A DNA stretch of 61,161 nucleotides, the filler included, from Platydemus manokwari (taxonomy: Eukaryota), in the NCBI GenBank assembly GCA_037951405.1. It is 5 parts of 5 records of this genome, joined end to end, with 100 filler letters (N's around TTAATTAATTAA, not from the genome) between each part and the next. Parts side by side here need not be neighbours in the genome. Positions count along the whole stretch, not along the records: positions 27,759 to 38,586 come from JBBMOY011022191.1; 4 more parts are not named here. The stretch is one strand, 5' to 3'. A model generated the notes under the pieces. The model searched no databases and was not told the origin of the DNA. It was given only the letters and a program-made list of their open reading frames with translations. Every line of letters starts with the position of its first letter. Positions within the stretch are counted from its first letter, which is position 1. Position numbers and translations under genes: made by a program. Shown here piece by piece: positions 31,930-38,548 of the stretch.

Positions 31930-34900
31930 ATGAATGGTAAATTCAAAACAAACTCCTTTTTAATTTTATTAACAGCATTAGTGCTAATAAGTGAGTTTAA
32001 ATAATATTATATTCAACTAACTTTTTTAAATGGTCAATTAGGTTGCATATCAGTCTTTGCTATCAAATGCAAAGTTTGTCAAAACTGTCAAACTTTTAAC
32101 GCTAAAATTCGTAAACATACGAATTGCACATTTTGTCAGACAAGATTAAGGCGCTATGACGGAAAAACATTTATGAATAAATCATGTGTTTCAAAATGTA
32201 AATTTTTAGGATTAGAAGACCCTCTCAAAACAATTTGTTGCAACACTGATTTTTGCAATGATGTGGGGAAGATATATGAATTATGTATTTATTCACTTAT
32301 TATTTAATTTTTATATTTTTTATTTTTTTAGATGTTAGCAAAAAACTACGATGTATAATTTGCAAAAATTGTAAAACCAATTATCAATATAGCGTTAATT
32401 ACTATTGCAAATATTGTTTGACAAGCACAGAAATTGATAACACAACACAACGCTCCAAAATTATATCAAAATATTGTCTAAAAAGTCTAAAAAATATAAC
32501 CACCTATTTACATTTACACATTTTTTACTGCAATTTTGAGTTCTGCAATGAAAATGCTACAGGATCAAAACCAAGTTTGTTTCTACTTTGTTTGTATTTT
32601 GATTTTAATAATATATTTTTGAGATGATTATATAATTAATCTTTTATTTATGAAATAGTATTAGTAAATCACATCCGTTGCTGGGTCTGCCGAAAGTGCA
32701 ATTATTCGAATATAATACGTGATTTTCAGTATAACTGCACGTACTGCTTAACGCACTTACATAAATCTATTGAAGGTGGCAACAGGTTAACGCTACAAAA
32801 GTCATGTAATTCGCAATGCATATTTTCGATTTCGAACATTTCATCTGTAATATCGTGTTGCCAATATGGTTTTTGCAACACTTATGTCAGCATGCAAGTT
32901 ACAGGTTTGATTTAAAATTTTAAAATTCTCATGTAAATTATTTATTAAATAATTACATAGTTGCTTTTAACAACTTGACTACTTAAGATGATATTCTTTT
33001 GTGAATCATATCTGATATTTAACATATATGACTATTAATAAACTCTCGAATACTTTAATTTGATTTACTATCAGTCCTATCATTTCTGGCTCTTTACTGA
33101 ATTTGTTTAATGTCAAAGTAAAACAACCATTTTCTGTACTTCTGTAATTCTGTACTTTTTAAAAAAATTTTCTATGATAACTCATAAACTCTTCCATAAT
33201 TTGATTTTTATATGATATTGCATCATTAATAAAAAACCGTGGTTTTCTACCGAAAAGAACTTCGAATCGCAAATACTTCATTGGTTTGTGAGGTGACATC
33301 TGTAATCCATATTCAACATGTGTTATTACATCATCTAAGTATGAGTGATTCTTCAGTGATGCTATAATCATGTTTTTCGCTGTCTTAAAAGTTCTCTCAA
33401 TTAGGCCATTTGACTGTGAATAATTATTTCCGTTCTAACGCATAATTTGGATATTAATATGGATTGAAAATTTGTTCCACTGTTAGAATAGATACATTCA
33501 GGAGCTCCAAATTTGATTATCCACTCTTTGCACACATTCTCTTGCCCATATTCTCTGCGATAATATTCTTTAATAGAATAAGCGATACATATTTGGAAAA
33601 ATAATCTATAATACCTAGTATAAACTGGTTTCCTTGTTTCGTTTCATGATATGGTCTTGCAATATCGATGACAACAATTTCAAACGGCTTATTTGTAATT
33701 ATTGATTGCAATTTAGCTCTAAGTTCTCCATCAATTTCCTTAGCTGATGAGCATTCAATACACAAATGCACGTATTCATGAATATCTTTTCTCCAGCCTT
33801 GCCAATAAAATTCGTTTTCAATAACTTCGGTTTTCTCTATTCCGAAATGTCTTCATTTTTCATGGATCATTTGAACATACGTCTTAATATCACATTGAGG
33901 TACTATATACCGATATATTCTATTTTTCTTATTGGATAATGCATCACTTCTAATTTTCAAGTATTTCATTTTTCCACACATTTTGTATCGAAGAATTATT
34001 AATAAATCCATGATACTCCAGCTGAGAACTGCATTTATCACTATTTTCAATTCTTCATCTTTATTCTAACACAAAAATATCTATTGTTCTACTAGACACA
34101 AACCTTTCTCATCTTCGTTACACGACACATTGCTTTTTTATTGTCCACCTTTATATTGCTTCTTTTTTGTGGATTTTCATGCTTTATAGAGCATTGTTCA
34201 TAATCTGGAAATTCTAATATCGCATCTGCATTGATGTGTTCTTTGCCTTTTCTATATTCTATTTCAATTTCGAATATTTCTAGCTCTGCTTTCCATATAC
34301 AATATTGTGATGTATTTGAAGAATTCCAATTAAGAAATTATTTCGAAGCTTCATGATCAGTTCTCACAATAAATTTCTTTCCATATAAGTAAAGCTTAAA
34401 TTTTTTAACAAGCACATAGATGGCTAGAAACCCTTTTCTTATTATACAATATCTATGATGCACCTTTGCCAATATTCTTGATGCATAGGCTATCAACCTT
34501 TATTCATCGTTTTGTATTTGAGAAAGTACGGCTCCTATAACACTGAAAGATGTATCAGTATTCAAAACATATTTCCCTTTTTTGCATGGTAAACTAAGAA
34601 CCGGTGCTGAAATTAATAGTAGCAAAATAATTTATAAACTATAAAAACAACATAGTCCCAAAAATTCTTGTAGTTCCTTGACACATTGAGGTTTAAACCC
34701 ATTTTTATAACCCCAAGGTTGTTTTCATCTGTTCGTATGCCGTTTTCGTTAATCACGTGTCCCAGATACTTAATTTCTTTTCTTAAGAAAAACCTTTCTT
34801 TGGGACCATATTTAACCAAGCCTCATCGATTTAATCCAAAACTCTTTCCAACCTTTCATTATTTTCATTGACGGTTCTTCCAAATATCAGAATACCATCT

Positions 34901-37900: not shown

Positions 37901-38548
37901 AAATCAATACCAATTGTTCTTTATGCGTTTCAACAATGTACAGTAAATCATACTTTTACATCGAAAGTTTAATCACACGATCATGTTCAATCAAATGCCC
38001 TCAGTCACGTATTGCAAAAATATTTTGTTGTAATACCGACTTTTGCAACGAACCAGAGCCTGGAACATTTCAAGGTTAAAATTTTTATTCACTTACTGAT
38101 CACATTTTTTAATAGAACAAAATTTAAACATGAAAATCACATCTTTTGTGAATTTTTATGATAAAATGTAAATTTTTAATTTAAATTATTTTCAGATCTT
38201 ATTAATAAAACCAGTTAGCATCAGTTTGTCTAAATGTCTTTTTGGAATATATTTTAAAATAATTAATGGGAACAAATATAACTTAACATATAAATACAGC
38301 TCAGGTTTCGTTAAGAAGAATCAGCTGCATTGTTTGTGATAACTGTCAAGATAATGACTTAGGAATTTCAGTTGAAACTAATTGCTCATTTTGCGTGACA
38401 ACAATAAGATGGGTAAATGCCACAGGACGTGATTCTATTGACATGCACTGTTCTTTAAAATGCACTGTTCCTTTCAACAGTAAAATAGATTCAATGATAT
38501 GCTGCACGGACGATTTCTGCAATTCAAAAATAAATGTTCGAAAAACAG
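31930..38548 (+). CDS. Signal-peptide protein with at least 5 tandem Ly6/uPAR (three-finger) domains; 3' end lost at spacer
   Basis: Exons 31930-31990 (MNGKFKTNSFLILLTALVLI), 32042-32284, 32332-32574, 32659-32904, 37832-38074 and 38300-38548, all GT-AG and all phase 1. The spliced frame is open throughout. Each domain exon has C-x2-C-x2-C-x11/12-C-x2-C-x16/19-C-x3-C-x9/12-CC-x4-CN (domain 2 lacks C7 and C8). Confidence 0.88.
33000..37211 (-). mobile_element. Near-full-length decayed Ty3/Gypsy retrotransposon (gag-PR-RT-RNaseH-IN) inside intron 4 of the three-finger gene
   Basis: gag start MCDNSIIFKEPRIFNGENV (ATG 37211); knuckle CFECRQK; protease-like KILFD; RT PLVLVRKKD..RMCVDYRNLN, GQFQFNRLPF, CVIYLDGIL, YLGHVI; RNase H TDTS..IGAVLSQ, IAYASR, RTDH; integrase PFEIVVIDI, IDYFSKY, QSNGLIER. 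Gypsy domain order, many stops. LTRs not identified. Confidence 0.9.

Follow-up and report, generated by a model that had tools for sequence, protein, structure and literature searches.

Proteins with one or more Ly6/uPAR (LU) domains occur across 22 invertebrate phyla (PMC13719153), and proteins built from several such domains have been described from humans and from Drosophila. The human LU-only multi-domain proteins comprise uPAR with three domains, CD177 with four, and C4.4A/LYPD3, Haldisin/LYPD5 and TEX101 with two each (PMC6600238), and the multi-LU proteins of Drosophila carry anything from 2 to 44 LU domains (PMC6600238, section 3.2). LU genes typically consist of a signal-peptide exon followed by two exons for each LU domain, this set being flanked by phase-1 introns and the generic intra-domain intron sitting in loop 2 of the domain; multi-domain members keep the two-exon set for every one of their domains (PMC6600238). 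In vertebrate multi-LU proteins, the domain without the 7–8 disulfide is always the N-terminal one (PMC6600238, section 4.3). Here we describe a multi-LU gene of a different build from Platydemus manokwari (assembly GCA_037951405.1), located in a window of 61,161 nucleotides, by which we mean the whole stretch of DNA that was analysed, filler included. The piece examined covers 27759–38586 of this window (record JBBMOY011022191.1), and the gene runs on its + strand from 31930 to the contig edge. It is probably best explained as the 5′ end of a protein-coding gene from an animal with an AT-rich genome, with a signal peptide and at least five tandem LU domains, one per phase-1/phase-1 exon, the product of which would be a secreted or membrane-tethered, N-glycosylated protein.

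Five domain exons follow the signal-peptide exon (Table 1), and their lengths of 243, 243, 246, 243 and 249 nt agree exactly, coordinates included, with those proposed in an earlier reading of the same DNA made without database searches (hereafter the sequence-only reading). Each domain exon is one open unit of 80–82 codons, preceded by AG and followed by GT, with the acceptors lying in a T/A-rich tract, and phase 1 is found at every junction (junction codons S, Y, I, D and A), so the symmetric phase-1 exons claimed in that reading are indeed present. A signal peptide on a separate exon and domains flanked by phase-1 introns are generic features of LU genes, and both are seen here. The introns measure 51, 47, 84, 4927 and 225 nt. 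In the signal peptide, the hydrophobic core extends from exon 1 over six residues at the start of exon 2 (CISVFA; the junction reads SCISVFA and then IKC), and cleavage is likely just before IKC, the peptide and its cleavage site having been judged by eye. At the 5′ end, an in-frame TAG stands immediately before the ATG of exon 1. At 31920–31932 the AG inside this TAG abuts the ATG, about 20 nt downstream of a TATAAATA-like stretch; that the two could form a trans-splice acceptor, if this is a spliced-leader lineage, is pure conjecture. At the 3′ end, exon 6 is followed by a good donor, ACAG/GTAAAA, placed eight residues and 1 nt after the CN, as in the other four domain exons. Because of this placement the gene very probably continues beyond the contig edge, as the sequence-only reading had also proposed, with the caveat that the reading frame is open through the last 38 nt as well and could represent an unspliced tail.

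Table 1. Positions of the gene and of the retroelement in its fourth intron, counted along the whole window.
Feature	Position	Strand	Description
Exon 1	31930-31990	+	61 nt; ATG and the larger part of the signal peptide (MNGKFKTNSFLILLTALVLI + 1 nt); phase 1, with donor GTGAGT
Exon 2	32042-32284	+	243 nt; end of signal peptide and LU domain 1 (D1); 10 Cys, NCT sequon at C4
Exon 3	32332-32574	+	243 nt; LU domain 2 (D2); 8 Cys, three N-x-S/T sequons
Exon 4	32659-32904	+	246 nt; LU domain 3 (D3); 10 Cys
Exon 5	37832-38074	+	243 nt; LU domain 4 (D4); 10 Cys; counterpart in metagenome contig L001
Exon 6	38300-38548	+	249 nt; LU domain 5 (D5); 10 Cys; donor GTAAAA at 38549
Start of next intron (less likely a read-through tail)	38549-38586	+	ends at contig edge
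Decayed Ty3/gypsy-order retroelement	33159-37200	-	about 4 kb, antisense inside intron 4 (32905-37831)
gag CCHC motif	near 36580	-	part of the retroelement
Protease-like stretch	near 36378	-	part of the retroelement
Reverse transcriptase motifs	near 35180, 35003, 34905	-	YLDG in place of YxDD
RNase H	34338-34496	-	Pfam RT_RNaseH, E 7e-14
Integrase-like remnants	33849-33517	-	part of the retroelement

The exon array is real and lies far above chance. The piece is very AT-rich (17–35% GC in 500-nt windows), and at the local composition the probability of a stop is 0.092 per codon, which gives an open run of 81 codons a probability of about 4e-4; the upstream 4.2 kb, read in six frames, offers an open stretch of 65 codons at most. 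None of the six exons contains a stop or a frameshift, and their GC content is 27–37% compared to 8.5–20% in the short introns. All five occurrences of the motif CxxCxxC in the six-frame translation fall within the proposed exons, where 200 shuffles gave 0.26 on average and 3 at most. Neither the preceding 4.2 kb nor the minus strand was found to contain a further LU-like exon, and Rfam and tRNA scans of the piece returned no match.

The family was assigned from searches run exon by exon, with single domains or domain alignments as queries. D2, D3 and D5 match none of the Pfam Ly6/three-finger models, and since single domains are too divergent for Pfam, a profile of all five was searched against 1.84 billion cluster representatives. 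It returned eight matches, and the seven with a name are without exception Ly6/uPAR proteins from animals. The best match (P0001, E 3.6e-15) comes from a metagenome contig, L001, followed by a Trichobilharzia protein with two LU domains (P0002, CAH8834312.1, E 5e-9) and a Brachionus plicatilis protein with five (P0003, RNA42694.1, E 9e-9, with five matched stretches); the others are single- or two-domain proteins of Clonorchis, Helobdella, Paragonimus (‘CD59-like’), Calicophoron and Brachionus. The link to Pfam is indirect, in that the profile of the window domains finds proteins which themselves match the Pfam LU models: in an alignment of 19 domains (A3), relatives included, Toxin_TOLIP (PF00087) is matched by 11 and UPAR_LY6 (PF00021) by 9, with a best E of 4e-9. 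The CD59 model PF25152 is matched by no window domain, and weakly by one relative in A3. The neighbours found with a language model are all Ly6/uPAR clusters. A word-index protein search with D4 gave nothing, and with the 19-row alignment only the Calicophoron protein (P0008); a JGI metagenome scan with D4 gave no relative, and exact look-ups of two window open reading frames (97 and 114 aa, from prokaryote-style gene calls) gave no match.

Among solved structures, SLURP-1 already comes first with the five-domain profile alone, and with the A3 profile the leading matches are SLURP-1 (6e-8), Lynx1 (1.6e-6) and GPIHBP1 (2e-4), essentially all the remainder being three-finger toxins or BMP/activin receptor ectodomains. 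For D4, modelled with AlphaFold2 from the A3 alignment, the best 50 Foldseek matches are all three-finger proteins, at TM scores of up to 0.59–0.67, and VIA-align superimposes the model on irditoxin (Z 7.4, root-mean-square deviation 2.8 Å, 71 of 77 residues) and also lists uPAR D1 (Z 5.0), Lynx1, LYPD6B and ALK1. On this evidence, good from the profiles and moderate from the fold, the domains are LU three-finger domains, which upholds the family proposed in the sequence-only reading: the profile matches only Ly6/uPAR proteins and the D4 model only three-finger structures. The check suggested there, of folding and comparing each domain, succeeded in part, with D4 coming out as a three-finger domain at moderate confidence and the AlphaFold model of D1, for which the five window domains served as the alignment, being poor (predicted local distance difference test score, pLDDT, 49.6).

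Each domain exon follows the pattern C-x2-C-x2-C ... C-x2-C ... C-x3-C ... CC-x4-CN. D1, D3, D4 and D5 have ten cysteines in register, the plesiotypic LU pattern, and the C-x4-C-N is invariant. In D2 there are eight, with C7 replaced by L and C8 by Y, and as both partners have gone the 7–8 disulfide has been lost as a pair, as would be expected if the protein folds and is under selection. Twelve N-x-S/T sequons are spread over the five domains, and an N-C-[ST] sequon at C4, which presumably recalls Asn18 of CD59, stands in all domains other than D2 and is kept in P0001 and P0008. Identity between domains is 20–33%, falling to 10–23% when the shared cysteines are left out. The features noted in the sequence-only reading, namely CCx4CN ends with YCx4CN in the second domain, a C4 sequon in four of five domains and loops that can hardly be aligned, are therefore all seen. 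The CxxCxxC start, described there as typical of flatworm CD59-like/Ly6 proteins, is not confined to flatworms, since the same start is found in the rotifer proteins P0003 and P0006, and it does not establish a flatworm origin.

The only close relative in the collections searched is L001 (ENA ERZ27257134, contig k141_2511013), a contig of 530 nt. At 63–314 it carries an open exon of 252 nt with the same acceptor (tttag/ATTGGCC) as exon 5 and a donor at the same place (AG/GTT), and the length differences between the two exons are multiples of three. The encoded protein is 49% identical to D4 and 29–36% identical to D1, D2, D3 and D5, and it shares the WP start and CNEP-x-PG end that are D4's own. 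Like the window gene, the contig is AT-rich, with 36.5% GC in the exon and 24% in the flanks. We take it to be the exon that stands in the place of exon 5 in a related organism, and, since it is much nearer to D4 than to the other domains, the domains were already distinct before the two organisms split. Identity between the two exons is 67% at first, 66% at second and 46% at third codon positions, and the Nei–Gojobori dN/dS is 0.24, a rough value; to judge from these figures, exon 5 at least is under purifying selection. In its own record the L001 exon is annotated as a ‘protein’ of 137 aa, the call having read past the splice donor and on into intron sequence.

The feature which sets this gene apart is the absence of the intra-domain intron, a typical though not a defining part of LU genes, from all five domains and from the L001 exon. 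Intron positions were established for four relatives by mapping them onto their own genomes. In the Brachionus protein P0003, five of five domains are split after the residue following C5; the same C5+1 position is used in both domains of Trichobilharzia P0002, which also has phase-1 borders between its domains, in the single domain of Calicophoron P0008 and in both domains of Helobdella P0005. The two-LU gene of Helobdella robusta (L005, KB097495.1, 2001–3712) has no intron between its domains, the reverse of the arrangement in the window. As none of the window units or the L001 exon has the intron that all four relatives possess, the simplest history would start with loss of the intra-domain intron and continue with repeated duplication of the single symmetric exon that this left. 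The array would accordingly have been built from an LU exon already without its intron, through duplications that are probably old, with the copies kept under purifying selection. This bears out the exon-duplication array proposed in the sequence-only reading, along with its statement that LU domains are typically split over two exons, which the literature supports (PMC6600238).

Five homologous exons of 243–249 nt in tandem, each symmetric in phase 1–1, have the usual look of a cluster of alternative exons, and most of the flatworm and rotifer relatives found have a single domain. The exons might then be alternative and not additive, with cassette or mutually exclusive splicing joining the signal-peptide exon to one or a few LU exons, and these to a tail exon further downstream, to give a repertoire of one- or few-domain isoforms. 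This we consider unlikely: all the lengths are multiples of three, and no frame break would enforce exclusion; the introns of 47–84 nt between the domain exons are not appreciably shorter than intron 1 (51 nt), which is obligatorily spliced; the multi-LU relatives are annotated as additive, with five domains in Brachionus and two in Trichobilharzia and Helobdella; and the hydrophilic linkers have the length that is normal between domains. That exons can be skipped in frame is a logical consequence of their 1–1 phase only. A further suggestion, that regulated skipping or choice of the symmetric LU exons generates many recognition proteins from one gene, is still less probable. It builds on the symmetry of the exons and on each of them encoding an autonomous, highly divergent binding domain that has stayed distinct since before the split from the L001 organism; if true, it would make the array a Ly6-based counterpart of Dscam-like diversity.

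If, as the additive arrangement implies, all the exons are joined in one mRNA, the product would enter the secretory pathway, and each domain would fold alone into a disulfide-locked beta-sheet core with three variable loops, the domains being connected by linkers of about 15 residues and carrying several N-glycan sites. The mature protein would most likely be an extracellular binding protein in which the divergent loops give each domain its own binding surface. Most invertebrate Ly6 proteins are anchored by glycosylphosphatidylinositol (GPI) or through the membrane. The same is probably true of this protein, a GPI- or membrane-tethered form being most likely because hydrophobic tails of the GPI type are found at the ends of its closest single-domain relatives. 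The mucus, defence and toxin-like roles raised in the sequence-only reading are speculative, as are its combinatorial isoforms. A role as a toxin we discount, since the similarity to snake toxins is one of fold alone, and the sequences nearest to this gene belong to endogenous Ly6 proteins.

The contig edge at 38586 cuts the gene soon after a donor site, and LU domains of invertebrates are also found on receptor kinases and seven-transmembrane (7TM) proteins (PMC13719153, Table 1). The five domains might for these reasons form the N-terminal ectodomain of a larger receptor, of transmembrane, kinase or 7TM type, that continues past the contig edge. Such architectures, however, usually have one or few LU domains, and the nearest relatives of the window gene are LU-only proteins with hydrophobic GPI-like tails, which makes a larger receptor improbable.

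Several points weigh against the gene being an additive array of LU domains as set out here. The best single-domain scores with Pfam Toxin_TOLIP, 15.9 bits for D1 (E 0.023) and 14.3 bits for D4, lie below the cut-off (gathering score) of 21.2 bits. The D4 model is of moderate confidence (pLDDT 62, predicted TM score 0.50), its Foldseek E-values are 3e-3 or weaker, and its Z scores are below 8. The donors of exons 2–5 (GTATTT, GTTTGT, GTTTGA and GTTAAA) fall short of a strong consensus, although they stand at the identical position in every repeat. The dS between exon 5 and L001 is 1.86, near saturation, and it is this that makes the dN/dS rough. Finally, the C-terminus lies beyond the contig edge.

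Intron 4 is long because a decayed retroelement of about 4 kb lies inside it (Table 1). The element carries many stops and frameshifts, and no pair of long terminal repeats was detected around it. A second reverse transcriptase-like scrap on the + strand at 28441–28690, reading RMCLDLRKFNAQT... and ...FNRLPFGL, resembles the reverse transcriptase of the intronic element; Pfam gave no confirmation for this scrap.

A retroelement of this size inside the array, together with the absence of the gene from the protein collections searched, might be taken as a sign of decay, the locus being dead or dying and its exons relics that are no longer expressed together. We consider this very unlikely. The six exons are intact in a sequence where open frames of such length are very rare, and all the splice dinucleotides are present, whereas the retroelement is antisense, wholly intronic and itself decayed. 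In addition, the counterpart exon in L001 is, by the codon comparison, under purifying selection, and random decay would not account for the joint disappearance of C7 and C8 from D2. The additive array of LU domains behind a signal peptide remains our preferred explanation.

Close in architecture is the Brachionus plicatilis protein P0003 (433 aa), which consists of a signal peptide and five tandem LU domains alone and resembles the window gene as far as that extends. Its domains likewise start with CxxCxxC and end in CC-x4-CN, the borders between them are in phase 1, and the gene lies in an AT-rich genome with introns of around 50 nt. In contrast to the window gene, each of its domains is spread over two exons, with the intron after C5+1, and the domains are 52–73% identical, reflecting recent duplications with TTPTPT linkers, compared to 20–33% here. 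P0003 is not an orthologue of the window gene.

The multi-LU proteins of the vertebrate PLAUR cluster, to which the human proteins named above belong, likewise offer tandem LU domains behind a signal peptide, phase-1 borders and one domain that lacks the 7–8 disulfide. In these vertebrate proteins, however, it is the N-terminal domain that lacks this bond, whereas D1 of the window gene has ten cysteines and the loss is in D2; the vertebrate domains keep the two-exon set, and there is no detectable specific sequence kinship. The window gene falls outside the vertebrate uPAR group because the loss is in its second, not its N-terminal, domain, and the two arrays are most likely independent expansions. 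Drosophila multi-LU proteins also provide invertebrate LU-only arrays, some with 8-cysteine domains, but they were not recovered by the profile search and are therefore not close in sequence.

The best named sequence relatives are the flatworm CD59-like/SmLy6 proteins and Trichobilharzia P0002, which share the signal peptide and CxxCxxC start. Both domains of P0002 have eight cysteines without C7 and C8, like D2, and the single-domain flatworm CD59-like/SmLy6 proteins have a hydrophobic GPI-type tail. Unlike the window gene, these proteins have one or two domains, each split after C5+1. The CD59-like proteins of S. mansoni have been tested as possible complement inhibitors (PMC3812095), and since they were tested only as possible inhibitors, no function can be transferred from them to the window gene.

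Considering how far the gene is new, the sequence-only reading had not recognised it as a described gene, and this stands insofar as no close relative other than L001 was found among the 1.84 billion representatives; the kind of protein, in contrast, has been described before. The multi-LU architecture is already known, and the window gene is an unusual variant of it, with one exon per domain and domains that are unusually divergent. By the searches made here it appears to be without a close sequence relative in any annotated genome covered, and it thus adds a well-defined multi-LU gene from a lineage that lacks close annotated relatives. Beyond its gene structure it is an ordinary member of the family, and by itself opens no long-standing question. 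Vertebrate multi-LU proteins offer a parallel in their own loss of the 7–8 disulfide, which in the window gene affects an internal domain. As a case of array building it is a clean example, in which an intron otherwise conserved in rotifers, flukes, leeches and vertebrates would have been lost and a single symmetric exon then multiplied and diversified. The LU domain is here a true one-exon module, which according to the review literature it generally is not.

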